A stretch of DNA of 64,000 bases from Cyanophora paradoxa CCMP329 (lineage: Eukaryota; Plantae; Glaucophyta): positions 62,001 through 126,000 of the forward strand of contig QPMI01000533.1 of assembly GCA_004431415.1 (NCBI GenBank), given 5' to 3'. The notes beneath the pieces are model-generated. The model did not search any database and was not told the DNA's origin. It saw only the letters and a program-made list of their open reading frames with translations. A program made the translations under genes and the position numbers. Every line of letters begins with the position of its first letter. Positions within the stretch are counted from its first letter, which is position 1. Positions 7,243-38,511 of the stretch are shown piece after piece.

Positions 7243-8474
7243 TTAGACTCGAAAAATAGTGCCTCGGATGATGGGGCTACAGCCGTCGAGGACCTCGATG
7301 CCGCGTACGCCCGGGGCGGCGTACGAACTATCCTCGATGCGTTCAAAGACGTTCTTCACCAGCTTCCCGCGGCCGTAGTGGAAAACAAGCATCCCCAGTT
7401 TCTGCGCATGCGGGGATCCGGACCCCATGGTGAGAATTTGAAGCCTGGGAATCAGAAGCGCGAAAGAAGGGGATAAATTGAAAGCGCGACGGCGTGCCTG
7501 ATCTCGAACGCGGTTGCCACGAACAAGAGGATCTGCGTGCAGCAAGACCCCGAGAGCGGCCTTGCGGTTCGAGTAGATTTCATTGGCCACGAACTCGCCA
7601 GCGGCATGCTTGCCGATCCACACGCCGCACTCCCGGTTGTCATGGATGCGGTTGCTGCGGAAGGTGGGCGCTGTGCCGCGGCCCTGCACAAGCACCGCTG
7701 CCGCCCGGCAGCCGCTGATGTCGTTGTCCTCGATGGTGCCCGCCGCTCCGCTGTGAACGAATACGCCGTTGCATGGCGAGTCACGGATGATATTGCTGCG
7801 GATCGTCGGCGCCGTGTCCTGATCCCTGACTTCTATGCACGACATGGCTGCCGTTGTGATGCAGCAGTCCTCGATAACAGCACGGCTCCCGCGGCCGATG
7901 AAGACCGCGGGGTCGTTCGTGCTCGCGCCGCGAATGGTGATGCCGCGGAGGGTCGGCCGCGCCGACGCGATGCAGTCGACGGTCACGTCCTCTGTCCACT
8001 CGAGGACGGCGTCGCGCGTGCCGACGACGTAGACGTCCCTGTCCAGCACGAGCTGCTCGCAGTACCTGCCGCCCAGGCCCGCCTGTCAGATGCGCAACGA
8101 AGAATCCGTCCCGGGCCCGCAGCAGCGCCGACGTCGACGCTCGCATGCGCATGCGCGCACCGGCCCGGCTGCACGATCACCACTTGGCCCGGCGCTGCCG
8201 CCTGCACGGCCTCGCCGATTATTTTGTACCCTAGCTCACCAGTCCAGTTCACAAACAGAGGGGATGTCCGCAGCTGCAGGGCAATTCGCGAGACAATGAG
8301 CGGATCACGATCGCGATCGTATACGTACGCGTATATATTTATCATCAGAAAGGAGTGAAACTGAAGGCGGACCTTTTTTTGTGGGATCTTCAGAAAGGAA
8401 AAGAGCACCTTAGTCGCCGAATCCGGAGAAGCGAGAATATTGATGTGCGTGGCCATGGGAGGTGAAGCCGTCCC
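7243..8474 (-). CDS. Parallel beta-helix (PbH1/CASH, FBXO11-like) exons; inverted duplicate of 13200-14381; probably the 3' half of the gene starting at 9750
   Basis: GYKIIGEAVQAAAPGQVVIVQPGRY and repeats such as PTIRSNII and GTIEDNDI. Near-identical to the reverse complement of ~13425-14160. In-frame acceptor GCGCAG ending at 8475; internal ATG at 8456. Confidence 0.75.
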
Positions 8475-8776
8475 CTGCGCGCGCCCCGGCTTGGGTTCCC
8501 CGGGGCATATCTAGACATATATATAGCTATAGGGGAAGCTTAAGCTTACAATTAAGGCAGCGACGCATGCGCATGCGCATGCGCGCGCATGCGCATGCGC
8601 ATGTACCTGCACATTCGCGATCGAATTCGACGGTGAATTTGAATTCGTAGATGTCGACGTCGAAATCGATTTTGAAGTCGCCTTGAACGATATCGACAAC
8701 TGAGTATGGCGATGCCATGATCATTAATATTTCAATTGACCATGCAAATTAGAACGTTAACATGAAGCTAAGAGCG

Positions 8777-9750
8777 CTAGCATGATATCGATCTCGCCGA
8801 GTCGATTGCGAGCGGGCTGGGACGCACCCGCTGAGGGCGAGTGCGCAGGCGCACGCCCCGACGGCGTGTCGACGACGGCTTACAGCTAGGGTCGATATCG
8901 ATGTCGTTTCCGATGCCCAAGGCGGCATGCGCATCCGTAGCGCTAGCTACGAGCTCGGCGGCTCGGCGCAGGCACGACTCATTGGCCGCGGTTTCGGCCA
9001 GATCGCGATTGGTGCCGGCAAGCGCTTGCCCGTTGACGTTCCACGCGGCCGGGCCCGCGACGCTGGCCGGGGTCGGTGCCGGCGCCGCGGCCGGCCGCGG
9101 CCGCGGTACTGATGTCGGCTCGGGCGCGACCTCAAGTTGCAGCACCTTGTCTGGCAAACGCGCGGCAGTCAGCAATTGCAATGCGTATATATAGTTATAC
9201 GCGTGCGCAATTAGCAGGGTCACATGATCACGTGCACCCGCATGCAAAAAGTCCGGCATATCGCGCAGATCTAGCTGCTGCGGCGGCCTCGATCGCGAGC
9301 TCCCTCGGTGAAGTAAGACCAGAATCGTCTCGACATCTGCGCTATGTGTATGAATTTCACATGAGGGCATGCGCATATATATGCATCCGGCCGCATATGC
9401 ATGCACATGCGCAGCGCGTGCGCGCGGCCGCGGCTGCAGGCCTAGGGCAAACCACGAGCTGGATGGCCGCGGCCGGCGCCGGCGCCCCTGACCTTGCGGA
9501 CAGCCTCGAGCGATTGATGAGGCACCACCTTTCCCTCGCCCGTCATCACAAGAAAGATGAGCCGCAATCGCTGTCGCTCCTCGGCTGAGAGCTCCACCGC
9601 ATCGATATCGCCAACCTTGGTGAACTCAACGCTGTCGCGCATTCCCGGCCATCGCTCGAGGGCGTCTCGCAACGCGCGCTCGAGCTTTGACGGTAGAATG
9701 CCGATAAGAGCGACACGGACGGTTTTTGGGGGTCCTTCAGTAGCCGACAT
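8777..9750 (-). CDS. Uncharacterised alpha/beta (TIR/flavodoxin-like) domain protein, partner gene of pair 1; possibly spliced onto the beta-helix exons at 8474-7243
   Basis: ATG at 9750. Alternating strand/helix pattern VRVALIG / KLERALRDAL / RLIFLVMTG / SLEAVRKVR / DVETILVLLH / KVLQLEV, similar to the C-terminal domain of the gene at 32976-35538. Confidence 0.6.
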
Positions 9751-9881
9751 TGTGCCCCTTGCTCAGGCGTCGTGACATGCGTCGTGTCAGGCGCCCTGCA
9801 GCTGGACCACCTGGATCGTGTGACCTGGACGGGTACCCGGTACATCAGCCCTGTCGCCGGCGGCCTTGAACTGCAGCGGCA

Positions 9882-12800
9882 ATGCCGCCGCGCCGGACGC
9901 ATCAACCTTTGCGAGCAGCAACAGCAGCAGCAGCAGCCGGGCGCAGCAATCACAGCGAGCATCCCGATCACAGCCAAGTCATCCCGAGCAGCAGCCATTC
10001 GCCGCAGCCCGCTCACATCACCATTGCGGATGCAGGCAGTCAGCCCCTGGCGCTCTTGTGGGCGCTCGAGACGGCGTCGAGCTCAAGGAGCACGCATGAA
10101 GCTGAGCTTGTCGCTGTCAGGAGTCGAGCGAATGGCCCGCTCCGGGCAAAAGAGGACATGCTTGTAGAGCTTGAGGTGCGGTGGCTCAGTCAACGCACTG
10201 CTTCTGCGGTGCCAGACGCCGCGTCGCAGTTTGCCATTCCGCAGTGCCAGCGCACCTGGGACCCTGGCGGCTGTATGGTGCGGCTCTCAAAGAACCATGC
10301 AGCAGCGCACTTCGCGCCCGTCGAGGCGCCGCTCGCGCGCGGGGCGAGTGGTGTACGCTCGCGGGTGCGCCTCGCACTTCGACCGCTTGCGGACCCGCGT
10401 CCGCTTGCGGAGCCGCGTCAGCAAGTGGCACGGACGCTGAAGAGGCTACCGAGCGCTCTTGACTTCGAGCTGGAGGCCGGGGGGCAACGCGTCGGCGGGG
10501 GAACGCTTCCGCTCCGCTTTGGCGCGCCGCCTCCTTCGTTGCGAGCCCCATGTAGCGAGCTGAATCCGTCGCAGAGGATTTCACTGGAGATCTGCGCGAC
10601 CTGCCATCTTCGTGGTTACCGCCTCGCCTCCTCGTCGCCGGGCCTCCATCCTCGCTCAAGGTAGGCCGCCCTATTCGCCTCGGCACTCCTTGCCGCTGAA
10701 CAACTGCCCATGCAGACGGAGCTGATTGACATGATGGCTGCGTCCCTCTGTCGCACTGTGCCCCACTTATCTCAGGCCGGCAAAGACGGCGTCCGCGAGA
10801 TCGACTTGCGCGCGCTCGACCGCGGTTGGGGCCTCTCCGCCCCACCGCACTGCATCCTCATCGAGGCGGGGTGAGCCCCACCCTGTTTCTAGGATCGTAA
10901 TATCGCTTACTGGCTGCAGGGAAGCGGTTTCAGCGGCCACCGCCGCTCTGCAGCGGATCGCAGGCGACGCGCATGCAGTTTGCCTCTGCCTCCGAGGCTC
11001 GGCAGCGTCAGAAGACGCGGTGATTGAACCGCTCGGGACTGCTCAGGCCTTCATTCGGCCTGCATTGGATGTGATCCGTAGGATCGGTGCGGATTTTCTC
11101 ACTACCCCCCCCCCCCCCCCAGGAGCTCATTCCTCATTCCTCGTTCCTTATTCATTCCTTAACAGGCCTCCCGACCCTCGTGGTCATCACGGACGACTCC
11201 GAAGAAGGCCTCGTCGATCCCGACGCCGCGCTGGTTGCCCGCGAGGTTGTGGCGGACGCCCTCTCCATCCCCGTCGAAGAGGTCAGAGCAAACCAGCTCC
11301 GCCGCCTGGCCCAGCTCAAGTGCTTGCAGGTCCTGTTCGTGCCGGGCGTCTCACGCTTCGAGACGGAGCGCGCGAAACATTTTGAGAGCGACCGCGCGGC
11401 CTTCTGCACGCTGTTGCAGCTCGCGGGAGCGGCCCAAGAGCACCGGCTCCGGCGGCCCGACCACTTCGCCCTGGACGCCCTCCACCTCCGCAGCTTCGAC
11501 GGTGCGCTCCTCTCCGTTGTTTGCTCTGCGGAGTTCTCATCGAATAGGCAGCTCTTCGTGTTGTGTTTCTTATCGACCACGAGAACAACAAGGCCGCCTC
11601 TCTCTCCCTCCTCGACGGTCCTAACGCTGGTGATGCCGCCCGTGCACTCCTGTTCTTCTGGAGGGACGACCCCAATGAGGCGTGTATGCGCCCTTCCGTT
11701 CCAAGCAATCTTGAATCTGACACTTGAGGCTTGCAGGAGCGGCTGCGGGCGCTGGAGGACCCCGAGCGCTCGGCGCGCCCCGATCTAGTGCCGGTGCGAG
11801 CGGCGAGCGGGCAGCGGAACGCAGCGGACTTCGCGCTCACGTTCTGGGCGGCGGCCCTCCATGCTGCCTTGCCCGTCTGCATCCCGTTCTACATCGTCTC
11901 CGCGGACAACGCCGTTCTCGATGTCAGCCATCATCTCGCCTCGTGGCTAGGCGGCTCGCGGTCCGTCCGCCGCCTTCCGGGCGTCCGCACGGACCTGCGA
12001 CCGTTGCTTCTGGAAGCTGTGGGAGACGATGACTTGCGGAAGACGGCGCTAGCGGCCCTCGCCCGCCGTGCTGAGGAGCGCCTCCGGGCGGAGCGCCCAC
12101 GGCGTGCCTCTGCAGCTCTCCGGACGATCGCAAACACGGTCATGCGGGCTTGGGAGCGGGAGTGGTACGGCAGTCCCGAGGTCCTCATCCCGCACCTCGC
12201 TGCTCTTGGCGTCGAACTCGCCTTGGAACCTACCGGCGCCGAGGATTGGGTCGTGTACCGGTCGCATCTCCCTTCGCGAATGGCCGCCCGCCGGAGCCGG
12301 TACCCCCTCCTTGGAGACCTCGCGATCTTGTGGGTACGGCCCCATCCAACGCAATCTTCCAGCTCCGATGCCAATTCATGCTGCAGTTGGATCGGGGCGA
12401 TCTTCTGACACAGTCGGCCCTCCTCATGCGTATACTGGGTCGTCTTACTATGGACGAGCTGTCCCGTGTCGCAGCCATCAACAGCCTGTTCAGAGATCTC
12501 TGTCGCCCCCTTGCTTCGGCTTCTGCACTGCTGCCGGCGCCACGCGGGGCGACCCCTGTGGACTTCGACATGTCACCCCACGTGTCCCTCTTCGGTCGCG
12601 TCTGTCGCATCGAGTGCCGGTACGTCACGTCTTGGAATTGCAGATATATTTTATCTGTGCCTCCACGTCTCACATTCTAGCAGGGTCGATGGACTGAAGC
12701 TTGGCATTGCGATGTACAACGTGGTGTGCGGTCGAGAGCGCAAGTTCAGCTGCGGTTTCAAGGGGCCGTCGGGAAGCCTGCACAGGCGGGCCCTTGGCCC

Positions 12801-14381
12801 CAACGAGGCCTTAGTCGGGATTGAGGCACGTTGGCAGCCTCGAGAAGGCGAGGCCGTCCTTGTCGGAGTGGGCTTCATCTTTGCCGTGAAAGATTCACAG
12901 AGCTCTGAAGTGGAGTGGTCTATAGAGTCGGAGACAGCAATGAAGGGCTCCACCACAACCAGCCCTGTGTTCGTACCCTCGCAAGCCGTCTTCGTCCCCA
13001 TCTCGGTGCTCACTGATGCGCCATGCAGATCGAGCGTGCTCCGGGCGCCGCAAGGCTCAGAAGTTGTGGGCATCCGTGGCCGCGTCTCAGCCTGCGATGG
13101 TTGCATTGTCGACCTTAAAATTGTCACACGGGCGGTCGTGTCTGAGGCTTTCCAGGCTGCAGTCAAGGCGAGCTCTACTGGCGCCAAACACCCAATACCG
13201 GCGCCATCTCCCACGTGCACGCATATTCTTGCTTCTCTCGATTCAGCGACCAAGGCGCTTTGCTCTCTTCTGAAGGTGCCACAGGAAAAGGTCCGCCTCT
13301 TCATTTGTTCCTGAAACGTGCAGCAATCGCGAGCCGCTCATTGTCATGCCTTGCGACTTGCCCTGCAGCTGCAGACGCCACCGGTGTTGACGGACCGAAC
13401 TGGTAGGCTCGGATACAGCTCGATCGGCGAGGCCGTGCAGGCGGCAGCGCCGGGCCAAGTGGTGATCGTGCAGCCGGGCCGGTGCGCGCATGCGAGCGTC
13501 GGCGCTGCTGCGGGCCCGGGACGGATTCTTCGTTGCGCATCTGACAGGCGGGCCTGGGCGGCAGGTACTGCGAGCAGCTCGTGCTGGACAGGGACGTCTA
13601 CGTCGTCGGCACGCGCGACGCCGTCCTCGAGTGGACAGAGGACGTGACCGTCGACTGCATCGCGTCGGCGCGGCCGACCCTCCGCGGCGTCACCATTCGC
13701 GGCGCGAGCACGAACGACCCCGCGGTCTTCATCGGCCGCGGGAGCCGTGCTGTTATCGAGGACTGCTGCATCACAACGGCAGCCATGTCGTGCATAGAAG
13801 TCAGGGATCAGGACACGGCGCCGACGATCCGCAGCAATATCATCCGTGACTCGCCATGCAACGGCGTATTCGTTCACAGCGGAGCGGCGGGCACCATCGA
13901 GGACAACGACATCAGCGGCTGCCGGGCGGCAGCGGTGCTTGTGCAGGGCCGCGGCACAGCGCCCACCTTCCGCAGCAACCGCATCCATGACAACCGGGAG
14001 TGCGGCGTGTGGATCGGCAAGCATGCCGCTGGCGAGTTCGTGGCCAATGAAATCTACTCGAACCGCAAGGCCGCTCTCGGGGTCTTGCTGCACGCAGATC
14101 CTCTTGTTCGTGGCAACCGCGTTCGAGATCAGGCACGCCGTCGCGCTTTCAATTTATCCCCTTCTAGATTTCAAGCTTTCCGCTTCTGGTTCCCGGCCCT
14201 TCTCACCATAGGACCCCCACAGGAACTGGGGATGGTTGTGTTCAACGGCGGTCGCGGGACGCTGGTGGAGAATGCTTTTGACCGAATCGGGGATCCGTCG
14301 TACGCCGCCCCGGGTGTACGCGGCATCAAGGTCCTCGATGGCTGTAGCCCCATCATTCAAGGCAGTAGTTTCCATTACTAG
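9882..14381 (+). CDS. Multidomain protein: beta-rich domain + degenerate IFI44-like P-loop domain + PIN/NYN-like domain with HTH-like tail + F-box + jacalin-like + F-box-like + PbH1 beta-helix
   Basis: Frame-compatible splicing gives LPLRF|EDFTGDL, RLLVAGPPSSLK|T, CILIEAG, AHAVCLCL, IG-LPTLVVIT, KHFESDRAAF (IFI44-like). Then RNAADFALTF...FYIVSAD (PIN-like), LLMRILGRLTMDELSRVAAINSLFRDLC (F-box), LGPNEALVGIEA and APQGSEVVGIRGR (jacalin-like), then the beta-helix. The start codon and the 11500-11740 junctions are uncertain. Confidence 0.65.
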
Positions 14382-14741
14382 CTATGTATTGACGTCGACC
14401 GTACCGGTCTTTCGTACATGCATACCCTGGAGAAGATTTAGACTCTGAGAGCGCCTTGTTGGCCTGCTTCACGTGCACATCGTAATATTTGATCAATTCT
14501 GAAAATCGAGTTCTGATATCAATACATAAATATTTAATATATACTATGATAGTACAAATTATTATGGACGCAATACTAAACTCCCAGGCTTCTATCTTCG
14601 AAATTCTCTAGCCGCTGATCATGAGCGCTAGCTATATAGCCCTTGCGATCTAGCTATCCGCGGCGGAACCATCCGTTTCCTGCGACAAGTTCATCGGGCG
14701 AAGGGGGCAGCACAGGCCTAGGCCTAGAACGCGCACGTGCA

Positions 14742-17010
14742 TCAAGTAGCTGCATCAAGTAGGCCGGGTTCATCTGCGCCATTTCGAATTCCAACGCGGG
14801 ATCGACGCCGGGGCCGGCCACCGCAGCGGGGAGCAGCTATCGGGGCGGTAGTCAGCGGACGCGTTTCGAAGAAGGCGGAGCGAAGCACTGCGACACGAAC
14901 CGGCAGCGGGTTGCAGGCGAAAACCTGCATCTCCTCCGGCGCAAGGAGCGCGAACTGTTGAAACCGTTCAGACGGAGCGCGGGAGAAGACGAAAGGGAGA
15001 AGGGGGGGGGGGGGGGGGGGGGGGGTACGGGGGCGCACCGCCTCCAACATGCTGCGAACGAGCTGAAAGAACGCGGGCGGCAGTGACGCCTGCAGCGCCT
15101 GCAGGGTCTGCAGCGCCTGCACCGCCGGATGCGGACCCTGAACTTCCACCGAGCCGCCCGGCACTGCGCATGCCGGCACTGCCGTCAACTGCATGCGGAA
15201 ACGGAAGTCATCAGCTGGCGCGAGCAGGGCCCGATCGCGAGCCAGGGGGCGCTCACCGGCTGCAACGACAGTGACGGGATCGGCGCGCCGTAGTTCAGAC
15301 CACGACCGAGATCGGGACCAGGGCTCTGATCCCGGAGCGAGTCCAGCTGTCGAGAGAAAGGTGAGGGGGGCGGGGCGCGCTGGGCAAGGGCGGGGCGTGG
15401 GGGTCGGCTCACCGGGATCATTGGAGTTCCCGCGGGGCTGGACGAGAAGGAGGCGCTGGTGCAGTTGGGGAGAGCGCCCGCAGGCTGCTGCGGGCGGCGC
15501 GTCAGCGCGCTCTGCAGACGCCCCCGCACCGTACCCCGCACCGAGTTGGCCGGGGAAGACGACGAGGGCGGCGCGGGCGAGGAGGGGCCGTTGGCGCTCT
15601 CCCCATCGTACGAGCCGCCGCCCTCGCCGCCCTCGCCGCCGCCCCCGCCCTCCTCCTCGGCGCCCTCCTCCGCGTCTTCCTCGTCGGCGTCCTCCTCCTC
15701 GGCGCCCTCGACCTCCTCGCAAGCGGCCAGGTCCCGCCGCCGCCGTCCGCGCCGCCGGGGCGGCTGCTGGGGCCGCCGGGGCCGCCGGGGGGCCGGGGCG
15801 GCGGCCTGCGGGGGCCCCTCCGGCCCCCCCGGCCCCCCGGCCGTGGGGGCGGCCGGGCCCCCGCCTCGCCCGCCTCCGCCACCGCCGTCCCCTCGCCGCC
15901 TCCGCCGACGTCAGCCGCCGCCGGCTCCTCCGCCGCCGCCTCCTCGCGCCCTCCTCCGCCGCTCGCCGCCTCCCCGCCAGCGCCCGCCGCCTCCTCCTCC
16001 ACCGCCCCGTCGCGGACGCCAGCGCCCTGGCGTCACGCCGAGGCCGGCGCCGGCGTCGAGGCCGGCGCCAGCAGCTGCTCCTGCGTCAGCGCCGTCAGCG
16101 CGAAAGCGAAAGCGGAGGAGGCGAAGGCGGTACGGGAAAGCATGGGGCGGCGGAAAGGTGCAGCGCCGCCGCTCCCGCCGGGCTGCATCGCGGCCCCGGC
16201 CCGACGCGTCCCCTGCCCGCCGCGGCAGCCGCCGCCCCCCGCGCCAGTCTGAGCACGCGCAGCGGGCGGCCGGCGGATCGAGCAAGCCGCCCTCCGACCC
16301 CCGCGTCCGGGGACCGCGGGCCGCGCGGTCAGCCGGTAATCCGGATCCAGAGGCAGCCGGTGCGGGACCCTTTCACGCAGCCGGACGCACTCGTCGGCTA
16401 GCTATAGCCGACCCGCACGAGCTGGCGACGGGCGAGGAGCCCGCAGCGTGTCGGAGAAGCAGGCGCATTGCCTAACCGCGCGAGCGCCCCTAGGCCTCGG
16501 ACGAGGAGAGCTTGCCGGCCCCTCCTCGCGGCGGCCGCTCGCTCGCTGCGGCGGTGGCAAAAGGCTCAGAGGCCGGCAGGGAGACCATCGCCCAATCCGT
16601 GTTGCGCACCTGAGCCGTCCTGTAAGGCGTGCCGTGATCCTCCTGCCCATTGCCGGCGGGCGGCAGCTGCGAGAACGCCGCTGTGCGGCTCCTGCAGTAT
16701 GCGCGCTGCGCGGCCGCCGGACGCACGCCGAGCTGCACACACTCGAGTACTAATGAAATGGCTGCTTTGCAGCCGCGCCCCGGGCCTGTCCGAGGGCGTA
16801 GAGCTCGCCCCCTTGAGGTTGACCGGAATCGGGTCAACTCTTTCACGAGAGCGCACGGCGGGACGCGAACGAAGGGCCGCTGCGGTACGGGGAGCTGGCA
16901 GGGCTCGCTCGAGCGCTGTTGCAGGCCGTACAAGATGGCTCCGAGCACTTTGAACATCCTGCTGAAGCGGCTTCGGCGGGCGCGACTGGCTGCGGCTGCC
17001 GCGCGGCATG
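14742..17010 (-). CDS. Array unit 1: chimeric orphan gene or pseudogene
   Basis: Shared 3' exons LSTAGLA..SEPWSRSRSW and ERFQQFALLAPEEMQVFAC. The middle includes a copy of the IFI44-like gene tail. The 5' end is uncertain (candidate MPRGSRSQ). Confidence 0.35.
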
Positions 17011-18282
17011 TCGTCGGGTGGGGCACGGCGCAGCGCGTCGCGTCGCGAGAGAGGAGAGCCGCGTTGCAGCTTTGAGCACACGTAGAGCTCTTCTGGCCGA
17101 GAGCTTTGCAGCCTGCGCCGGCACTGCGTATGGCGGGTGCAGCGGATCCGGAAGGAGCGAGTGGTATGATCGATATATCGAGCGTCCCTCGTAATGCCGC
17201 AGGTGCCTGCAACTCGCGGGCGTGCGAGGTAAGAAGCGCCGCTGCATTCGTTCGTGTCGGCCACGCTGATTATGACTTGCAGCGCCTGCCCAGCCCGGCC
17301 CCGGGCGAGTTGGTATGCGGGGGCGCCGCGAGCATCCGCTTCTGGAGCGATAATCAGCGCTTGAGCTGAAAAGGGGGCGCCGCGGGAGGTGGGGCCGCGA
17401 GCTCGCGCGTCTCCCCTCATGATCAGCGGACGCCCGGCCCGCGGCCCAACACGGCTCGAGCTCCTGCCGGAGGCGCGGGGCTGGCGGTCCGCGCCCCGCG
17501 TCGTCTCAGCCCGCGGGTGCGCGCCGTGGACTCGGAAGCCGCCCTTTCCGCCTGGCCGCCGACGTCGCCGGTGTGATCAGTTGCCCACCAGTCCCTCCCG
17601 CCCCGCCCCGCCGCGGCGCAGCTGGAGGGCCTGGACTCTGGGGCGCACGCGTACGGTCGTGGCCGACGGCTGCCGGGCCCCGCTGGGGCGGCGTGCAGGC
17701 CCGAGGCGCGTCGGCTCCGGTCCTCTGCACGAGGACGGCGTTTTCGCTGTCCGCCGCCGCCGCCGCACCGGCCCCCGCCCCGTCGACCTCCGCCGCCGCC
17801 GCTAGCTCTCGACGTCCCCTACTAGGCTACTACTAGCCTAGTACGTAGGCTTGAGGGGCTCAGCGGCTAAGCTGCGCTTCGCGATGGCGCCGGTGGCGAA
17901 ACCTATATAGCTATGGTGAAACCAGTATACGTAGGCAGGCTGAGCCAGGCTCGAGCTAAACAACACATGCAGAGGCCGCCAATCGCTTTTTGCGCACAGC
18001 TTGTGCACATGCCGTGTCAAAATTGATGTTCTGCACAGAATAGAAGCCTATTTTATTGGCTCGAAGCTCGATCGCGATCGAGAATATTGCGTTCCGACAA
18101 CACAAAGAAGCTCGGACCCCCAACAGCATCAGGGTTCAGCTGCGGGCTAGGGGTCTGTGAACGGGGGGACCTGTAGTCACGGCCTGGCGGGGCCGGGACT
18201 GCAGAACGCCACGCATGTTCACTGGTGTGCAAGCAATCCGTTGCCTGCGCCAAGTTCATCGGGCGAAGGGGGCAGCACAAGC

Positions 18283-27304: not shown

Positions 27305-28235
27305 CTATAATGCGCACCGAAGTGATCGGCGTTGGCGGCCAGGCTCACCTGCGCCATTTCCGACGCGGGATCGACGCCGGGGCCGGCCACCGCAGCGGGG
27401 AGCAGCTATCGGAGCGGTAGTCAGCGGACGTGCCTCGAAGAAGGCGGAGCGAAGCACTGCGACACGAACCGGCAGCGGGTTGCAGGCGAAAACCTGCATC
27501 TCCTCCGGCGCAAGGAGCGCGAACTGTTGAAACCGTTCAGACGGAGCGCGGGAGAAGACGAAAGGTAGAAGGGGGGGGGGGGCGGGGGGGGGGGGGGGGG
27601 GGGGGGGGGGGGTACGGGGGCGCACCGCCTCCAACATGCTGCGAACGAGCTGAAAGAACGCGGGCGGCAGTGACGCCTGCAGCGCCTGCAGGGTCTGCAG
27701 CGCCTGCACCGCCGGATGCGAAACCGGAACTTCCACTGAGCCGCCCTGGAGAGCAGATTCCAGGCCAAGCGTCGGCACTGCCGGCAACTGCATGCGGAAA
27801 CGGAAGTCATCAGATGGCACGAGCAGGGCCCGAGCCGGGATGCGCTCACCGGCTGCAACGACAGTGACGGGATCGGCGCGCCGTAGTTCAGACCACGACC
27901 GAGATCGGGACCAGGGCTCTGATCCCAGAGCGAGTCCAGCTGTCGAGAGAAAGGTGAGGGGGGCGGGGCGCGCTGGGCAAGGGCGGGGCGTGGGGGCCGG
28001 CTCACCGGGATCATTGGAGTTCCCGCGGGGTTGGACGAGAGGGTCCCTCCATCGGCGCCCCCGCCCTCAGCGCCCCCGCCAGCGCCCGCGAGCGCGCCCG
28101 CAGGCTGCTGCGGGCGGCGCGTCAGCGCGCTCTGCAGACGCCCCCGCACCGTACCCCGCACCGAGTTGGCCGGGGAAGACGACGAGGGCGGCGCGGGCGA
28201 GGAAGGGCCGTTGGCGCTCTCCCCATCGTACGAGC

Positions 28236-28266
<31 letters not shown>

Positions 28267-29660
28267 CGGCCGCCAACTCCCGCCGCCGCCGTCTCCTTCT
28301 CGCCCCCAGCCCCGCCGGCGCCGGCGGCTTCCCCCGCCGCCAACTCGCCACCGGCGCCGGCGCCCTGAGGCTACTCCGGCGCCGAGGCCTACGCCTCTCC
28401 GGGGCCGCCGGAGGCGCCGCAGCCACCGGGGCCGATGACGCCGCAGCCGTCGACTCGCTGTACGGCTGCAGCACTGCGCGCCACCTCCGCCGCCGCCTCG
28501 TCGCGGGCGCCAGCGCCCTGGCGTCACGCCGAGGCCGGCGCCGGCCGCTCCCGCGCCTTCTCCGGTCGCAGCGCCCCGCGGGTAAGGGGCGGGGGCGGGG
28601 GCGGGCCCTGAGGGAGGTCCCGAGGGCGGGGCGGGGGCGCCGCGCCGCCCTGCCCGCCGCACGCCCCGGTGCCGCCGCGCGCATCGGCGCCGCGCGCATC
28701 GGCGCCGGGGACCGGCCCCGGGCTGCGACGCGGCCCCGGCCCGACGCGCCCCCGCGACGCGGCCCCGGCCCGACGCGCGCGCAGCGGGCGGCCAGCGGGT
28801 GCGACAAGCAAGCCGCCCTCCGACCTCCGACGTCCGGGGACCGCGGGCCGCGCCGGGTGCGACGAAGCCTGCGGCGGGGCGGGGGCGCGGTCAGCCGGTA
28901 ATCCCGATCCTGAGGCGGGACCCGTTCACGCAGCCGGACGCACTCGTCGACGTCGCCAAGCTAAAGCCGGCCCGCACGCGCCAGCTGGCGCCGCGCGCGG
29001 AGCCCGCAGCGCGTCGGAGCAGCAGGCGCATCGCCTAACCGCGCGAGCGCCCCTCGGACGAGGAGAGCTTGCCGCGGCCGGCCGCTCCTCTGTAGGAGCG
29101 CCGCTCGCTGCGGTGGCGGCAAAAGGCTTAGAGGCCGGCAGGAGGAGCACGACCAAGCCCTGCGCGCACCAGAGCCGTCCAGCGAAGGCGTGCCGCGAGC
29201 CGGTCCTGCCCGTGCATGCGCAGGTGGCTGGCGGGCGGCATCTGCGAGGACGTTGCCTCGCAGCCCGCAGCGCCTTTCTGCGGCGCTCGCTCGAGGCCAA
29301 CGCACCGCTCTAGATCTGCAGCTCCTGCAGCATGACGCGCATGATGAGCGTGGCTGCGTGCGTCAACTGCACACAGCTATGGCTCCTTTGACGCCACGCC
29401 CGGGGCCTGTACGAGAGCGTAGAGCCCGCCCCCTTCAGGCTCTACGGGCTCTACCCCTCTACGGGCTTTACAGCCTCTACCCCTTCAGGGTAGAGCCCGT
29501 AGAGCGTAGAACCGGACTCTTTCACGAGAGCGAACGAAGGGCCCGCTGGTAGGGCTCGCTCGATCGCTGTTGCAGGCCGTAGAAGATGGCTGCGAGCACT
29601 TTGAACAAGCTGCTGAAGCGGCTTCGGCGGGCGCGAGTGACTGCGGCTGCCGCGCGGCAT
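27305..29660 (-). CDS. Array unit 4: chimeric orphan gene or pseudogene
   Basis: Diverged version of the shared 3' exons. The middle holds a different copied piece of the IFI44-like gene tail (VLQPYSESTAAAS..APVAAAPPAAP). Confidence 0.35.
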
Positions 29661-30929
29661 GTCGTCGGGTGGGGCACGGCGCAGCGCGTCGCGTCGCGAG
29701 AGAGAAGAGCCGCGTCGCAGCTTTGAGTCAGCCGCGTCGTAGGACTCCGCGGCCTGCGCCGGCACTGCGCATGCCGGGTGTGCGATCCTTGTTCGAGGCC
29801 CCAGCTACAGCGGAAGGAGCGACTGGCATGATCAAGCGTCCCTCGTAATGCCGCACGTGCTGTAGCTGGCGTGCATGCGAGGTAAGACGCGCCGCTGCAT
29901 TCGTTCGTGTCGGCCACGCTGAGTGCATTTGCAGCGCATGCCCAGCCCCGGGCGAGTTGGTATGCGGGGGCGCCGACAGCGGGCGGGCCCGCGAGCTCGC
30001 ACTTCTCCCCTCTGCGGACGCCCGGCCCAGCGCGGCTCGAGCTGGCCGTCCTCGCCCCGCGTCGTCTCAGGCCGCGGGTGCGCGCCGTGGAGCCGCCCTT
30101 TACGCCTGGCCGCCGACGTCGCCGGTGTGATCAGTTGCCCACCAGTCCCTCCCGCCCCGCCCCCGCCGCGGCGCAGCTGGAGGGCCTGGACTCTGGGGCG
30201 CAAGGTCGCGGCCGACGGCTGCCGGGCCCCGCTGGGGCGGCGTGCAGGCCCGAGGCGCGTCGGCTCCGGTCCTCTGCACGAGGACGGCTTTTTCGCTGTC
30301 CGCCGCTGCCGCCGTACCGGCCCCCGCCCCATCGACCTTCGCCGCCGCCGCCGCCGCCTCCGGATCGTCCCGCGCGCCACACGCACGGGGCCGCGATCGG
30401 CGGGGTGCCCCCGGCCGCGGCGCGCCCCGGACCGCTTCCTCCTCCTCCTCGGGCCGGCCGGGCCGGTGGGGGGCCTTACTTATTCGGCAGTGCATTCGGC
30501 ATGATGCCGCGATCAGCAGGCGCCCCCGGCGCGCCCCGGACCGCTTCCTTCTCCTCCGATCCTCGGGCCGGCGCCGGCCGTGTCGGTGGGGGGCCTCACT
30601 TATTCGGCAGTATACGTAGTACTAGCTAGCTTGTGCACATGCCGTGTCAAAATTGATGTTCTGCACAGAATTGAAGCCTATTTTATTTGCTCGAATTCAT
30701 AGCCCAAACGAGAATATTGCATTCCGACAACGTTAACACAAAAAAGCTCGGACCCCCAACAGCAACGTTTTTCAGCTGCTGGCTAGGGGTATGTGAACGG
30801 GAGGGGGGACCTGTAGTCACGGCCTGGCGGGGCCGGGACTGCAGAACGCCACGCATGTTCACTGGTGTGCAAGCAATCCGTTGCCTGCGCCAAGTTCGTC
30901 GGGCGAATTTCGAAGGGGGCAGCACAAGC

Positions 30930-31195
30930 CTATAATGCGCACCGAAGTGATCGGCGTTGGCGGCCAGGCTCACCTGCGCCATTTCCGACGCGGGATCGAC
31001 GCCGGGACCGGCCACCGCAGCGGGGAGCAGCTATCGGAGCGGTAGTCAGCGGACGCGCCTCGAAGAAGGCGGAGCGAAGCACTGCGACACGAACCGGCAG
31101 CGGGTTGCAGGCGAAAACCTGCATCTCCTCCGGCGCAAGGAGCGCGAACTGTTGAAACCGTTCAGACGGAGCGCGGGAGAAGACGAAAGGTAGAA

Positions 31196-31236
<41 letters not shown>

Positions 31237-31845
31237 CGCACCGCCTCCAACATGCTGCGAACGAGCTGAAAGAACGCGGGCGGCAGTGACGCCTGCAGCG
31301 CCTGCAGGGTCTGCAGCGCCTGCACCGCCGGATGCGGACCCTGAACTTCCACCGAGCCGCCCGGCACTGCGCATGCCGGCACTGCCGTCAACTGCATGCG
31401 GAAACGGAAGTCATCAGCTGGCGCGAGCAGGGCCCGATCGCGAGCCAGGGGGCGCTCACCGGCTGCAACGACAGTGACGGGATCGGCGCGCCGTAGTTCA
31501 GACCACGACCGAGATCGGGACCAGGGCTCTGATCCCAGAGCGAGTCCAGCTGTCGAGAGAAAGGTGAGGGGGGCGGGGCGCGCTGGGCAAGGGCGGGGCG
31601 TGGGGGCCGGCTCACCGGGATCATTGGAGTTCCCGCGGGGTTGGACGAGAGGGTCCCTCCATCGGCGCCCCCGCCCTCAGCGCCCCCGCCAGCGCCCGCG
31701 AGCGCGCCCGCAGGCTGCTGCGGGCGGCGCGTCAGCGCGCTCTGCAGACGCCCCCGCACCGTACCCCGCACCGAGTTGGCCGGGGAAGACGACGAGGGCG
31801 GCGCGGGCGAGGAAGGGCCGTTGGCGCTCTCCCCATCGTACGAGC

Positions 31846-31876
<31 letters not shown>

Positions 31877-32452
31877 CTCGCCCTCCTCTTCGGCGACCTC
31901 CTTTTCCGAGCCGGGGGCGTCCTCGTCCGCGTCCTCCGAGCCGTCGCCCTCGACCTCCTCCCAATCCTCGGACCCCTCCGGATCCGGATCACGTAGCAAG
32001 ACGATGTACTGCACTTCTGGGCTTACGGGGTACTTGGCGGGAACACGATGTAGAGTTCCTTGGCGGGAACACGTAGCAAGACGATGTACTGCACTTCTGG
32101 GCTTACGGGGTACTTGCCGTCGACGAGAGGAACTTCTCGAATGACATAGCTTCGCTCTGCGACGTACAACCCGGGCTGGAGCCGGGCGGTTAACGGAGCA
32201 CGCGGTTGAGGGTCGGGCGGCTCGCGCACTGGTGGTTGCGTTGTTGCATCTCGGCGCTCTTTCCTACGATTGCGCTTCTCATTGCGCTTGCACTTCTCGT
32301 CCTCCGTCGCGGGCTGCTTCTTCGCTGGCCGCTTCAATGCCGAGGACGCCGCCCGCTTCCCTCGAGCTCTCTGCGCTCCGAGAGATTAAACATGCTCCCA
32401 GATTCATACAGACAAACCCGCAGCGTACTGGCTTATCCGCTCCGTCTGCCAT
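30930..32452 (-). pseudogene. Array unit 5: diverged paralogue of the unit 2/3 gene, interrupted by an 80-bp-period duplication
   Basis: MADGADKP versus MTGGADKR, and YVIREVP...SPEVQYIVLL versus YVIRRVL...SPGVQYFTIL. The duplication at 31990/32070 shifts the frame unless it is spliced out. Confidence 0.45.
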
Positions 32453-32975
32453 CGCAGATGAAACGGACGGGTCAGGTGGCGGTCAAGTGCTTGTTCGAGT
32501 CGGCAGCAGCAGCATGCAGCTGCAATGACAATCAGTCAGCATCGTTAAGTCAGAAATAGGCAGGGCAAACATGATCAGTCAGTATCGTACCGCGTCGTAC
32601 CGCGTACATGCGCAGCTGGCTATAGCTACGTATACCCCTCCGATCGAGGCTCACTTGAAGTCACTTCCACTTCGAATTCAATTGCAAACATATATATACG
32701 TAGAATTGTATACGTACGTATCGAGGGACGGCGCGGGCGCCGGGTGGGGGCGGATCCGGACGGCACACAATTGCAAACTTTAACAAAGCTAGCAGGAATT
32801 CGAATACACACATCGCAAAAGCTACTAGCTATAGGCTAGTGCCAAAAAGGATGTGATATCGATCATGAGTCGACGTCGTGGGGATCGCGATCGTGAGGTG
32901 TGTGCGAATTCATTGTGAGATGTGTGCGAATTCATTATGAGATGTGACCGTGGAATTGAGGGCCAGAGCCGCCTC

Positions 32976-35538
32976 TTAGCCTGAAATGGCTGCAGCGTAA
33001 AGAGCTCGAGCGTGAAAGGGCCGTGAAAGGCGTGCAAGGCGTCGGAGCGCACCCATCGAGAGGAGCTCCATGAGCGTCCGCAGGTTGTCTACCCCGCGCG
33101 CGTCGTCCTCCCGCAGGCGCCCTTCGTAGTGCACGAGCCGCAGCACCGCCCGCCGCGGCGCCTTGACTGCGCAGCGCGCGAGTCAGCCACGACTCACGAT
33201 GAAACAAGAGCGGCTCACGAGGAGGGGACGGGGGAGGGGGGGGGGAGAGGGGGGGAGGGGGGACGGGGGGGAGGGGGGCGCATCACCGTTCAGGATGCCG
33301 GAGCCGTGGTCGACCGCGGTCGGGTAGTCATCGACCCTTGCGGCGTCGAAGCAGTTCCGAAGCACGACCAGGACGACCTCGATGTCCGATCCTGCGCCAA
33401 AAGTTGAGAATACGCGGGAAGGCATGCGCGGGAGAAGGACGTGCACCCCGGCGGATCGCGCGGACCGACTCCACGAGGGTGTCCGAGAGGCGCGAGCCCT
33501 GGGCGGTACCCAGGACGACGGCCGCGCCGCGCCCGGCACCGGCGCCTCCGTCGGGGGCGCCGGCCTTGAGCGGGCGCAGCTCGAAGGAGAAGCGGCCGCC
33601 GGCGAGGGACTCCATGAGGCGCACGGCCTGCTGCGCCACGCCGCCCTCGGCCGCCAGCGCCGACTCTGTCGCCAGGACCGGCACCACCGGCACACACGGC
33701 TTCGCCTTGGCTGGCACGCCGGCTGGGGGCGGAGCTGCCAGGGGCGCAGCAGCGAAGCGGACTGCCACGGCGCTTGCGGGCACGGCGGTGGTAGGTACGG
33801 CTGTTGGCGCCCGCGCGCCGCCAGAGAATGCGTTTCCGGGCGGCAGGCGGGGGCGAGCCGGGGACTGGCCACGCCGGTTCGTGACCCTGGCCGGGGCGCG
33901 CTGGGGCGAGGAAGTCCGGTTGGGAACAGTTGCAGGCGACCCGGGGCCCGGCGGGACGGACGGGAGATGGAGCACCTGGCCGAAAGCGCAAGGCAGGAAT
34001 CACGGAGGAGCGGGGGGAGGAGCGGGGAGGGCGCGCCGTTTCCACGACGGCGTCGATGGATGTAGAGATTGCGTTGGGGTCGACAGGCCACGGCAGCAGC
34101 GGCAGCTCGGGCCCGGTGCCGCGCATCGTCAGCGCCTCTCGCAGCGCACTCTGCTCGCCGTCCGATACGACGATGGCCTCGATCCGACGGGCCACCAGCT
34201 GCTTCCACGCGCGCGCAAGCACACCGACCTCCTCCGCGTCGGCGCCCGCGGCATGGATGAGGACGACCGCGGTCGCGTGCTGCATCGTTGGGTGCTCTGC
34301 TGCACTCGAGGCGGCGACAGGAACGGCATACAACCTGCGACCACATGTCAACGAGCGCGCAACCGCGAGGTCAGTGGGCGTCAGGAACCAGCGCGAACCC
34401 CCGGAAACGAAGAGCGTTCAGCAGAATGAAAGCCCGATCGCTTGCGCCGTTCCCGTAGACGATAACAATGGGCGGCCGAACGATGAGAACGTTGTTGATG
34501 TAAGAGCCTTCGACAGCGTACGGGCGGTCCTGGCACACAACGTAGTGCCCCCTGCCAGCTGCGTGCCGCATGAAGTCAGATACTTAGTAGTGCGTGTGGG
34601 ACAGCGGTCTGAACTGGCCTTCGATTTTGTACTGGTGCCGGCCGGTGGGGAGGAGCTCAAGAGCGACGTAGTCGCCGTGCTGATCGCGCTGCAGCACCAC
34701 CTCCGATCTCCAACCATCCCACGAGCCCTTGCAGGTTACTTGCTGGCCGGGCGGGCATGGACCCCTCCAGCGGAGCTCGGCTAGATAGCAAGGCGCTACG
34801 GGATCCGGCGGCATAACATGCACAGCCGGAGTCTGCGAGCTGAACAGGCTGCCCGTGATGTTGGTGAAACGGCGGACGCAGTCCGCCAGCTAAAGCTTCG
34901 CTGCCACACGACAGTCCGGCTGCGTCGAGAGACAGATCCATGTTCGGGTCTGGTGCCCCAGCAACGAACCACCATTATCGCGTACCCCGAGGCTCTGGTG
35001 CATTGGTGCAAATGGCCGGACAGGTGCCCCGCGGGTCTGGTGCCCCTCGCTGCCCTTTAAAGCGCGCTTCGCTCTTCTTTTGCTCTCCGCGCTCCGCAAC
35101 TTTTGCTCTAGATCTGGCAACCGCAACCGCAGCGATGACGGCAACCGCAGCGCAAGCTCTCGAACCGGCGCCTCTGGGCATCACGGGCCCGCCGGTCGAT
35201 CTCTGCCTCGTACGCCGATCGATCACTACCTCCCGCTTCTCGGTTTTCGTAACGCTTCTCGCAGGTCATTCCGGCGTATGGCACGTCCAAAAACCCAATA
35301 CTGAATACGTGCCGCGGCGTCTTGAGTCTTCTTGACTCGGGAAACACCTTAGCCGCCATCACGGCGTACGGCCCTGCACAGGTCACCCCCTGGAGCTCGG
35401 CCCTTGCAAGCCCGCAGAAGGCTAGAAAGCACCTGAATGACCTCCAGAGTGCGTTCCCGCTCTGTCAGTCATTGGCGCGCTCTCGGTCTGAGCGACCCAC
35501 ACAGATCAAGCCACCCAGCAGGCTGGCGCTGCCAACAT
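32976..35538 (-). CDS. CBM48 (AMPK-beta-type glycogen-binding) domain + TIR-like domain + shared alpha/beta domain; partner gene of pair 2
   Basis: ELRWRG...QVTCKGSWDGW...LPTGRHQYK...YINNVLIV (CBM48). PIVIVYG..DRAFILLNALRFRG..ATAVVLIH..IEAIVV (TIR-like). AAVVLGTAQGSR..LVESVRAI..DIEVVLVVLRNCFD..AVLRLVHYEG (shared domain). Start is 35538 or 35472. Confidence 0.65.
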
Positions 35539-35643
35539 AGTCGGCGGCATTCGCGAAGCGATCCGCACCTGCCAGCGCTCCTCGCGCCCCTCCTCCTCTA
35601 AGGTGCGCTTGTCCGTCGGAATGTTGTCTCTGCCAGATTAACA

Positions 35644-38511
35644 ATGACCGATGGTCCCCCGCAGATCATCTTGATCTTCGTCGACGGGTCCGCCACGCCT
35701 GAGGCGCTCGTCGCCGCTCTCGAGGCCGCCAACGACGCGCGCAATCTGGTCCGCCACAAAACTAGAAAGCGCATTCAAATTTGAACTCTTCGCGCCACAG
35801 GGATACTCCGTGCGCGTGGCGGACGTGGACGGCTCGTCCGCCGAAGCTCTGGTGGACGATGTGATGCTGGTCGCCTTGGCGGACCCCAACGCCCTCTTCG
35901 TGGGCAACAACGCCGTCGAGCAGCTCTACGAGGCCGTCTCCCGCCCCCGGAACCTGATCCCCGCCGGCACGTTTCTTCACCTAGCAATGTCACTGCCCGT
36001 GTCTCACTTTCCCCGCAGCCGGCGTCGGCGAAGCCGTCTCGGCCTCTATCCGTACGGCCTTCGTGCTCGATCACCCCGTTCGCATCGGCGATTCCGTCAA
36101 CGTTCATGTGGGGGTCCGCAAACCCTGCCACTCCTTCCGGCCCCGCTTATGCGCCACGGACCGCAGCTCGTCCTGTCGACTCCGGCTTCCGGTCAGACTT
36201 TCCGTCTTGTGGCGGTCGGGAACGACTATTTCTGGTGCGCGCGCTGTTTCGGCGGGGCGCGCAGTCCGCTCCTTTCCGACAGGCGGGGCAGCGGGGGGTA
36301 CGAGAGCAGCGTGGACATCGCGTCCGAGGCGGGCAAGGCCGTTCTGGAGGGGGAGCTCAGCCTAACTCCCAAGTTCAGCCGGGCGAACCTCCACGCCGGC
36401 GTGCGCGCCCTCAGGCCGGCTGTGCAGCTGGAGCTGTACAAGATCGAATCCGGCCAGCCCCCCGCTCGCGTGCCCCTCACCCGCGACTACCTCATCTTCC
36501 CCTTTGGTCCGCCAGCGCCTGCCCGCGGCGCTCCGGCCCGGTTCGCGATTGCTGACGCGTCGCAGAGCTGTTCACGGGCGACGTGTACAACGCTCGTTTC
36601 TACCCAAAGGACGGTCGCAGCAAGCACACAGTGCTCTTCCACGGGAGCGCCGGCTCTGGCAAGAGGCACGCCCCCGCCCGCCCGCCCGCCCGCCCCCCTG
36701 CGCGCTGACTTCCTGCCCAGCTCTCTTACCAATTCGATCTTCGCGAGCGTCCTCTCGCAGTCGGTGCGCGCATCGTCGACGGGCGGCTCCACTGGGCACG
36801 TCACGAGGCACTACCGCCGCTTCGCCCTCGACTCGACTATCCCATTTGCCCTCCCATTCGCCATCGCCGAGATGCCGTGCGCCCCCACCCGCCCGCTTCT
36901 GAGCGTCGCCGCCTCCGACTCCGCGGCAGGGGCAAGGACGACCACAACTTCGCGGGGGAGGAGCTGGCGATGGCCTGCGGCGGCCTCTTCGCCGACGGCG
37001 ACGCGGTACCCCTCGGGCAGGAGGCGCCCCTCACCCTCCGCGACAAGGTTCGGCCCCCACGCCCTTGCGCGCCGCCGCTGAGCCCGCGCGCAGCTCTCCG
37101 GGACCCGCCTGCGGGCCCGCGACAGCGCTGAGATCGAGCTGGAGCGCGCCGCCCCTGTCGTCGTCTTCGTCATCAGGCTCGTACCCCCCTTTCGCCGCAC
37201 CCTCCCCTCTTCCCCCCCCCCCGCACTCCCCCGCTTCAACCCCCCCCCCCCCCCTCTTAGGCCTCCCCCACCCTCCCTTAACTCCACCCTACCTTCCCCT
37301 TCCCCCCCCCCCCCCCCTCTTTTTCCCCTCCCCCTTCCCACAGCCCTATTCCCACGCTGAACTGTTCGAGCAGCGCGGAGGAGGCGCGCGGGGCGGATGT
37401 ACCCGACGGAGCCGTGGCGCGTCTGCAGCCCCACATCGAGGAGGTCATTCGCATCGGTTCGCGCAACCCGGCCCGGCCCTCGCCGCCCCAGCACCCCGCC
37501 GCTCACAACTGTCCCACGCAGGTCGCCGCATCTTGATCACTGTGACTCGCGGCGACGACATTGCGAACGCGGCGGAGGCCGCTTCGATCACCAACAAGCT
37601 CGTCCGCGCCCTCGCAGTGGACCGCAACTCGGTATGCCGACGATTTCCGTGCCATCCCGATGTAAACTTGGATCCAACATCGCAACGCAGGTCCACATCG
37701 TCACCAACAACGTCGACGACCGCGACAAGCACTTCGAGAAGGACAAGGTGCGAGGCGCCGGGGCCCGCCCGCACGCCTTCGAGCTGACGCCTTTCTTACC
37801 GTCTCATCCCAGGCCGCCTACCTCGCGCTTCTGGCGATGCTGGAGGACGCCTGCACCGTCCCGCGCTCCGTCCGTGCGCGCCGTCCCTCACTTCGCCCGT
37901 CCGCTTTCGCCTCCGCTGATTCCCGTCGCGCAGTGCTGCAGCCATACGGCCAGTCGACGGCTGCGGCGGCGTCGGCCCCGGTGGCTGCGGCGCCTCCGGC
38001 GGCCCCGGCGCTGACGCAGGAGCAGCTGCTGGCTGCCCTCGCGAGCCTCATGGGCAACCAGGCCGCGCCGGCGCCGGCCTCGGCGTGACGCCAGGGCGCT
38101 GGCGTCCGCGACGGGGCGGCGGAGGAGGAGGCGGCGGGCGCTGGCGGGGAGGCGGCGAGCGGCGGAGGAGGGCGCGAGGAGGCGGCGGCGGAGGAGCCGG
38201 CGGCGGCTGACGTCGGCGGAGGCGGCGAGGGGACGGCGGTGGCGGAGGCGGGCGAGGCGGCGGCCGGCACCGGAGGCGGCGGGGAGGAGGCCGAGGAGGA
38301 GGACGCACTGGAGAGCGACGTGGAGTGGAGCGGCGACGACGAGGCGGACCTCGACGTGGAGGAGGGGCCAGATCCGGAGGGACCCCCGCAAGCCGCCGGC
38401 CCCTCCGCCCCGGCCGCCCCCGCGGCCGGTGGGACTCACGAGCAGCGGTCGCCGCCCGCGGGGCCCTTGGCGCGCCTCGCGAGCGCGGGGAGAGCGTTGT
38501 TTGGGCGGTAG
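35644..38511 (+). CDS. IFI44-like P-loop GTPase with N-terminal TIR-like and beta-rich domains and an acidic tail
   Basis: Spliced TVLFHGSAGSGKS|SLTNSI (Walker A), GGSTGHVTRHYRRF, LPFAIAEMP, GLFADG, PVVVFVI, ILITVTRGD, VHIVTN..DKHFEKDKAAYLALLAML. Motif order matches the IFI44/IFI44L GTPase-like domain. Ends at 38088 if the 33-nt intron 38062-38094 is retained. Confidence 0.78.

Follow-up and report, generated by a model that had tools for sequence, protein, structure and literature searches.

We analysed a window of 64,000 nucleotides of nuclear DNA from the glaucophyte Cyanophora paradoxa (contig QPMI01000533.1). Our preferred reading, which we hold with modest confidence, is that it contains two genes for IFI44-type GTPases, each divergent from a small gene for an alpha/beta-domain protein, and that the two proteins of one of these pairs act together. 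In both pairs, called pair 1 and pair 2 in this text, the GTPase gene lies on the plus strand and its neighbour on the minus strand. Both plus-strand genes fall into a small family of IFI44-type GTPases that is scattered patchily among eukaryotes; within the TRAFAC class, it belongs to the septin/GIMAP-like group. An earlier sequence-only reading of this DNA had already described two head-to-head pairs. The layout held for both, as did the starts at 9750 and 9882 in pair 1. The starts given for pair 2 (about 35538 and 35644) were wrong: RNA joints and EukProt gene models place the ATGs at 34814 (minus strand) and 35135 (plus strand).

An expressed pair with an IFI44-type GTPase

Both genes of pair 2 are expressed. 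The RNA evidence consisted of assembled contigs over 32600-38599, for which runs X1, X4 and X6 behave as RNA and run X15 as DNA; introns were recognized by joints that were present in contigs from the RNA runs and missing from the DNA run. The plus gene (35135-38511) corresponds to the EukProt model tig00021036_g17305 (EP00741; exons 35135-38508), which has 18 exons and encodes a protein of 738 aa, labelled P0001 below. Eight of its introns are found among the listed RNA joints. A ninth (36666-36720, GC-AG) was taken from the EukProt model and a contig break, and the joined frame is continuous, with LFHGSAGSGK before the joint and SSLTNSIF after it. The last two introns of the model are absent from the listed joints, and without them the frame ends at 38085; we favour the modelled 3' end because the same acidic tail is kept in the paralogue P0003.

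The minus gene (32976-34814) runs from the ATG at 34814 to a stop codon at 32976-32978 and is covered by RNA contigs over 32671-34993. Six RNA joints, all missing from the DNA run, yield an open frame of 471 codons that is identical to the EukProt model tig00021036_g17304 (protein P0002, 471 aa). By RNA contigs and EukProt models, the interval that separates the two ATGs of pair 2 measures 320 bp (34815-35134), and within it the opposing RNA contigs meet at about 34988-34993: those of the minus gene extend to 34993, and another contig covers 34988-35209. The segment 35507-35602 was rejected as a start of the minus gene; it is a plus-strand vWA exon of g17305.

Four regions can be distinguished in P0001: a degenerate vWA domain (about 35190-35965), an Ig-like region (36018-36505), the IFI44-type GTPase domain (36565-37872) and an acidic tail (37936-38508). 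The first two had been overlooked before; a Pfam scan of the single exon open reading frames of pair 2 gave no match, and the EukProt models were needed. The vWA domain of P0001 falls just short of the Pfam cut-off (8.3e-5, 23.3 bits against 23.8), and its metal ion-dependent adhesion site position reads IPAYGTS. It is clear in eight relatives (Pfam, up to 3.8e-24), and the family profile matches collagen VI and integrin I domains. The GTPase domain carries GSAGSGKS as G1, followed by HVT, EMPG as G3, in which Glu replaces Asp, and TRGD as G4.

Only 19 relatives of P0001 were found with phmmer among 1.8 billion representatives at E below 1e-3. They comprise four Cyanophora paralogues (P0003, with 56% identity, P0004, P0007 and P0010) and proteins from the chytrid Gonapodya, Amoeba proteus and uncultured eukaryotes. 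Across the family, Pfam recognizes VWA and GTPase domains of the MMR_HSR1/Septin/AIG1 type and, at the C-terminal end, U-box and CCCH modules. A scan of viral contigs with the GTPase profile was blank.

The claim of an IFI44-like GTPase was borne out at the level of the fold. The AlphaFold 2 model of the P0001 GTPase domain (mean predicted local distance difference test score, pLDDT, 83.7, from a 14-sequence alignment) has IFI44- or IFI44L-named clusters as 7 of the 10 listed nearest ESM-Atlas models, with template modelling (TM) scores of 0.80-0.83 and a root-mean-square deviation of 2.7-3.0 A over about 250 of 266 residues. Searched against the PDB, a profile of the GTPase domains of the family matched septins (1.6e-7), IRGB10 (1e-5) and Toc34, and the best solved structure found with Foldseek was GIMAP2, at a TM score of 0.47 normalized to the query (TMq). 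There was no named IFI44 protein among the 19 phmmer matches at E below 1e-3, and the link to IFI44 is therefore one of fold. Pfam found no TLD match, i.e. no TLDc domain, in P0001 or in the 19 aligned family members.

Some features of the gene structures may be mentioned here. A 200-nt segment at 15852-16055, in a tandem array described below, recurs inverted at 38066-38268 in the 3' part of g17305 with 98.5% identity, and in both places encodes one acidic stretch, common to residues 601-651 of P0001 and 30-80 of the array protein P0008. This repeat is the probable cause of a break in the RNA contigs at 38063-38066. Introns and spacers contain long poly-C and poly-G tracts, 20-50 nt in length (5726-5800, 6590-6650, 27560-27612, 31180-31236, 37215-37320 and 39910-39990), and one of them sits inside a 197-nt intron of g17305. 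GC donors were seen in 3 of the 14 listed RNA joints (33976-34036, 34559-34618 and 37177-37373) and in the model-inferred intron 36666-36720; the share of GC-AG introns usually quoted for eukaryotes is about 1%.

A diverged family member in pair 1

In pair 1, the ATGs at 9750 (minus strand) and 9882 (plus strand) are each the first to follow an in-frame stop. By sequence reading they are separated by a spacer of 131 bp (9751-9881), which presumably acts as a bidirectional promoter. The N-terminal part of the plus gene (9882-11501) was assembled as a local spliced model with exons at 9882-10521, 10575-10660, 10716-10870, 10920-11086, 11166-11281 and 11330-11501. Its introns of 48-79 nt, with GT/GC-AG borders, were placed with the open frames as a guide, and the six exons hold an open frame over 445 codons that encodes an Ig-like region and a degenerate IFI44-type GTPase. 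No vWA domain was found in the pair 1 plus gene.

The plus genes had been called paralogues, and the comparison confirms this. The model matches the family hidden Markov model (HMM) with 23.2 bits (one target, E 1.1e-9), the match being made up of two colinear stretches. Against P0001 it reaches a Smith-Waterman score of 77, compared with 45.1 +/- 6.4 for shuffled sequences (z about 5; reached by 0 of 500 shuffles), a score that is somewhat inflated, because pair 2 guided the choice of splice sites in pair 1. Single exons of the gene were too short to be significant on their own against the family HMM, and BLASTP between fragments of both pairs gave nothing below E 0.02. The plus-gene motifs quoted earlier are present in the sequence. 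Three intron positions (between F and E, after RIG, and before VLFV/VHIV) agree between the plus genes in place and phase, as had been claimed, and two further introns lie within 2-3 nt of each other; in this comparison the introns of pair 2 come from RNA joints and those of pair 1 are modelled.

The G motifs of the pair 1 protein read GPPSSLK (Walker A), IEAG and ITDD. The P-loop is not intact and about 45 residues are missing after G3; the KHFESD motif (K-x-F-x-x-D) is kept. Judged from its sequence, the product is probably a pseudo-GTPase. It is about equally distant from the pair 2 GTPase and from all other family members. Since it is no closer to its neighbour in the window than to the others, a recent segmental duplication does not account for the two pairs. 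The GTPase of pair 1 represents an old and much diverged branch of the family; a PIN-like domain comes after it, and a beta-helix may follow.

The PIN-like domain is encoded by a plus-strand exon at 11722-12405, joined to the upstream exon by modelling; it matches Pfam PIN_11 at 3.8e-6 (27.5 bits, cut-off 26.6) over profile positions 64-108 of 118 only. Further downstream on the plus strand, the open frames at 12409-13311 had been taken for an F-box and a jacalin-like lectin. In Pfam, F-box-like reached 12.9 bits against a cut-off of 24.3 (E 0.096) for 12150-12677, and neither Pfam nor the PDB gave a jacalin match for the pair 1 plus frames. The codon-position GC pattern of 12409-13311 is weak, and a duplicated unit begins within it at about 13206. 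A beta-helix frame follows on the same strand at 13323-14381 (Pfam Beta_helix 1.1e-20), which may be the 3' end of the plus gene. No AT-rich break was seen between the PIN-like exon, the middle frames and this right beta-helix, and it is possible that one long gene reaches to the end of the latter.

The minus gene of pair 1, M1 (8780-9750), was put together from reading frames and splice candidates, with modelled exons at 9750-9487, about 9336-9239 and about 9150-8783 and a stop codon at 8780-8782. It would encode a small alpha/beta protein of about 242 aa with a Pro/Ala-rich tail. Its GC content shows the coding-like pattern of GC1 above GC2 and GC2 below GC3 for the three codon positions. 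A protein search for a EukProt model of M1, covering lengths of 155-493 aa, gave no match.

Beyond M1, and likewise on the minus strand, lies the left copy of a unit with a right-handed beta-helix of the CASH/AlgG-like type (7243-8456), which matches Pfam Beta_helix (1.2e-19) and NosD (2.9e-9) and, in the PDB, the AlgG C5-epimerase (3.7e-6). It includes an F-box-like helix, for which an F-box is not supported by Pfam, and no F-box match was found for the ILAS...KVPQEK helix. An AT-rich spacer of 300 nt (8500-8800, GC 0.42-0.50), similar to the 3' flanks in pair 2, parts this unit from M1. Because of this spacer, and of an ATG of its own at 8456, the unit probably forms a gene by itself, as far as can be read from the sequence, instead of adding an accessory domain to M1. 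The left and right beta-helix frames form an inverted duplication that had gone unnoticed (7253-8314 and 13323-14371, 91% identity); a 669-nt core is perfectly identical (7465-8133 and 13497-14165, 100%), and the arms are 84-91% identical.

Such a perfect core within more diverged arms suggests recent gene conversion or an assembly collapse. The GC content around pair 1 (8000-10000 and 12000-14000) is 0.60-0.63, compared with 0.65-0.75 in the surroundings, and GC at third codon positions (GC3) is also below that of pair 2 (0.63-0.78 against 0.81-0.84 in the expressed genes). Between the two pairs, positions 14671-31964 are occupied by a tandem array of five units of about 3.6-4.5 kb, which lie about 3.5-4.5 kb apart and share 88-98% identity. 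All five have a minus-strand gene whose product resembles P0008 (329 aa), an acidic low-complexity protein rich in Pro and Ser.

The minus-strand partners and a probable link to the GTPase in pair 2

The partner of the pair 2 GTPase, P0002, consists of an N-terminal CBM48 (34775-34476), a middle alpha/beta domain (34478-34046) and, after a low-complexity linker, a second alpha/beta domain at the C-terminus (33624-32979), subsequently referred to as M domain. The CBM48 is recognized by Pfam as AMPK1_CBM (1.8e-7, 31.7 bits, cut-off 26.8) and in the PDB by the CBM of AMPK beta-2 (4.5e-5). No match to a TIR domain was found in P0002 or its parts in Pfam or the PDB. Half of the accessory domains named in the sequence-only reading, namely PIN-like, beta-helix and CBM48, were recovered with Pfam, the PIN-like one just above the cut-off, and the F-box, jacalin-like and TIR-like calls had to be dropped. 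The middle domain showed no significant similarity that would make it a second copy of M. For the M domain, the best VIA-align match, to tautomerases at a Z of 6.4, was rejected because it lies within the noise range; an Atlas feature search with the M domain gave values of at most 0.83, which is chance level.

A link between GTPase and partner comes from P0006, a vWA plus GTPase protein of 812 residues from an uncultured eukaryote (a Joint Genome Institute, JGI, sample), which is encoded by a single uninterrupted open reading frame. Its C-terminal domain aligns with the M domain of P0002 over four ordered elements (AVVL..., a helix, (E)xVLLxVLR and xxxxLxHxxGxxxED). The Smith-Waterman score is 63, compared with 27.7 +/- 4.4 for shuffled sequences (z about 8; reached by 0 of 1000 shuffles), the BLASTP E is 0.008, and leave-one-out HMMs gave 2e-4 and 5e-4. 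Since the M domain is fused to a vWA-GTPase in this protein, the two genes of pair 2 are, by the Rosetta-stone argument, probably linked in function. The earlier proposal of a two-component system of GTPase and adaptor is moderately supported for pair 2 by this fusion, and was not shown for pair 1.

The two minus genes had been said to share an alpha/beta domain. What they have in common is a motif of 27-31 residues (TGEGKVVPHQSLEAVRKVR..VETILVLL in M1, TAQGSRLSDTLVESVRAIRRGSDIEVVLVVL in P0002), which reaches p 0.014-0.05; the claim did not hold over the full length. Two modelled introns of the minus genes have the same phase, with offsets of about 2 and about 5 codons. Tblastn with P0002 did not recover pair 1. 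On this sequence evidence, homology of M1 and P0002 is possible but not established. A duplicated pair with swapped accessory domains, as envisaged earlier, was not shown, the homology of the pair 1 partner not being demonstrable.

Neighbour checks beyond the window covered a Gonapodya homologue and four short metagenome contigs. In Gonapodya sp. JEL0774 (JADIIX010000028.1), the gene for the vWA-GTPase-U-box protein KAJ3341444.1 has a divergent neighbour at 7389-8840, which encodes 398 aa with a coiled coil and an alpha/beta region and has no Pfam match. The four contigs came from a metagenome scan with the GTPase profile, and none of them has an M-like neighbour.

Several of our results weigh against the preferred reading. 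The motif shared by M1 and P0002 reached a Smith-Waterman p of about 0.047 in shuffles, a leave-one-out HMM E of 0.014 (attained by 9 of 500 shuffles) and an hhalign P of 0.019 at a probability of 2.5%, and the full-length proteins gave p 0.56 by Smith-Waterman. The fusion evidence consists of one protein with modest statistics, as the BLASTP E given above indicates. The Gonapodya neighbour was rejected as an M-like protein: it looks alike by eye, and HMM, Smith-Waterman and hhalign tests were not significant. The M domain yielded no confident fold (AlphaFold 2 model with pLDDT 44 from a two-sequence alignment), and no relatives of it were found in Pfam, the Atlas, or metagenome, prokaryote-genome and viral contigs. 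On the side of the GTPases, the G3 motif of P0001 has Glu where Asp is usual. The pair 1 models, besides being guided by pair 2, stand without RNA support, the RNA contigs having covered 32600-38599. Finally, the defence role is without support, and PADLOC gave no meaningful match.

Function, alternatives and known systems

If the GTPase and its partner in pair 2 act together, the GTPase could, like GIMAP, septin, IRG and IFI44 proteins, switch or oligomerise under the control of nucleotides. A ligand or another protein would be bound by its vWA and Ig-like parts. The M domain might dock on the GTPase in the way expected of the fused protein, where both belong to a single chain, and bring along the glucan-binding CBM48 module for localisation or sensing. 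Among family members, C-terminal modules (U-box, CCCH and unnamed extensions) appear to have been swapped, and such variability would fit a modular sensor/effector system, possibly one of cell-autonomous defence. An innate-immunity role of the pairs, as proposed earlier, is suggested by analogy; in the collection of papers searched, none links IFI44 with Cyanophora. The partner in pair 1 may or may not be kin of that in pair 2. A bolder version, in which the split or fused combination of IFI44-type GTPase and M domain is an ancient eukaryotic module, retained in Cyanophora despite deep divergence, and pair 1 a specialised form with a dead GTPase that carries a PIN nuclease and a beta-helix as effector or decoy, appears distinctly improbable to us.

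It is somewhat unlikely, in our view, that the adjacency is meaningless, i.e. that two distant members of an expanded GTPase family lie 26 kb apart by chance in a region rich in duplications, each sharing a bidirectional promoter with an unrelated small gene, as is common in compact genomes, and that the likeness to P0006 reflects chance or a generic alpha/beta fold. Chance would agree with the lack of significant similarity between the minus genes, with a Gonapodya neighbour that is unrelated in the tests used, with the E of only 0.008 for the fusion, with the abundance of duplications in the region, and with a pair 1 GTPase that is no closer to that of pair 2 than to other members. However, it does not sit well with a score between M and P0006 that composition-preserving shuffles never reached, with a match that spans four successive structural elements in order, or with the same head-to-head layout for both family members in the window.

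Two further explanations concern pair 1 alone and the role of the module. Pair 1 could be a decaying relic, that is, a pseudo-GTPase or pseudogene from an old duplication, patched with a duplicated beta-helix and accompanied by an equally non-functional M1. The loss of Walker A and of some 45 G-domain residues, the GC3 below that of the expressed pair 2, and the missing EukProt model for M1 all point in this direction; yet six modelled exons keep 445 codons open with canonical short introns, long uninterrupted frames encode the PIN-like and beta-helix parts, GC content varies over the codon positions as in coding DNA, and the perfect 669-nt core suggests that two copies are being maintained and still undergo gene conversion. 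On this evidence, a relic seems unlikely. Alternatively, the module may be real and belong to carbohydrate or organelle biology, for example as a GTPase switch that is recruited to cytosolic starch by CBM48. Of the partner's domains, the AMPK-beta-type CBM48 is indeed the only one that can be named with confidence, nothing in the defence library matched, and septin- and Toc-type relatives have non-immune roles. Nevertheless, the nearest structural relatives are the interferon-induced IFI44 proteins, and U-box, CCCH and varying C-terminal domains would be typical of conflict systems; we regard this role as quite doubtful. The reading that we prefer remains that of two GTPase genes with divergent partners, of which those of pair 2 act together.

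With animal IFI44 and IFI44L, the pair 2 protein shares a GTPase domain with N- and C-terminal helical extensions, for which these proteins give the best superposition. They differ in that the animal proteins have a TLDc domain where P0001 has vWA and Ig-like domains, in that they are induced by interferon whereas Cyanophora is without an interferon system, and in the G motifs, G3 being EMPG in P0001 and the P-loop lost in pair 1. Matches of the MMR_HSR1/Septin type, as seen in members of the family to which P0001 belongs, have also been reported for oyster IFI44L (PMC11682996).

The best solved relatives of the pair 2 GTPase are found among GIMAP/AIG1, septin, Toc34 and IRG proteins (septins and IRGB10 by profile, GIMAP2 by Foldseek), but they reach a TMq of 0.40-0.48, as opposed to 0.80-0.83 for the IFI44 models, and have another domain context. 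Several of these GTPases act in immunity through nucleotide-dependent dimerisation. Within Cyanophora, P0004 and P0007 have the core of vWA, Ig-like and GTPase domains in common with pair 2. They carry extra modules such as CCCH or U-box in the same chain, whereas the presumed module of pair 2 (M plus CBM48) is encoded by a separate divergent gene; pair 1 differs from them by its PIN-like domain and dead P-loop.

Paired plant nucleotide-binding leucine-rich repeat (NLR) genes such as RGA4/RGA5 and RRS1/RPS4 are likewise arranged head to head around a short common promoter region, with one degenerate NTPase and variable accessory domains. There, however, both genes encode NLRs with a STAND NTPase, while the Cyanophora GTPases belong to the unrelated TRAFAC class and would cooperate with their partners at most by analogy.

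The mechanism of IFI44 and IFI44L is poorly defined, and the review that we consulted names no GTPase mechanism or partner. A protist family that combines the IFI44 GTPase fold with sensor-like vWA and Ig-like domains and swappable C-termini would suggest that this GTPase is an old, reusable switch. The M domain, either fused or encoded by a divergent neighbour, is a concrete candidate partner domain for IFI44-type GTPases. The new element is the partner gene in head-to-head position, along with the counterpart in which both are fused; the pairing rests on one fusion and on a similarity between the minus genes that is unproven. If the combination is indeed an ancient module that occurs both split and fused, it would correspond, in a protist, to paired immune receptors and may offer a clue to the function of IFI44 in animals.

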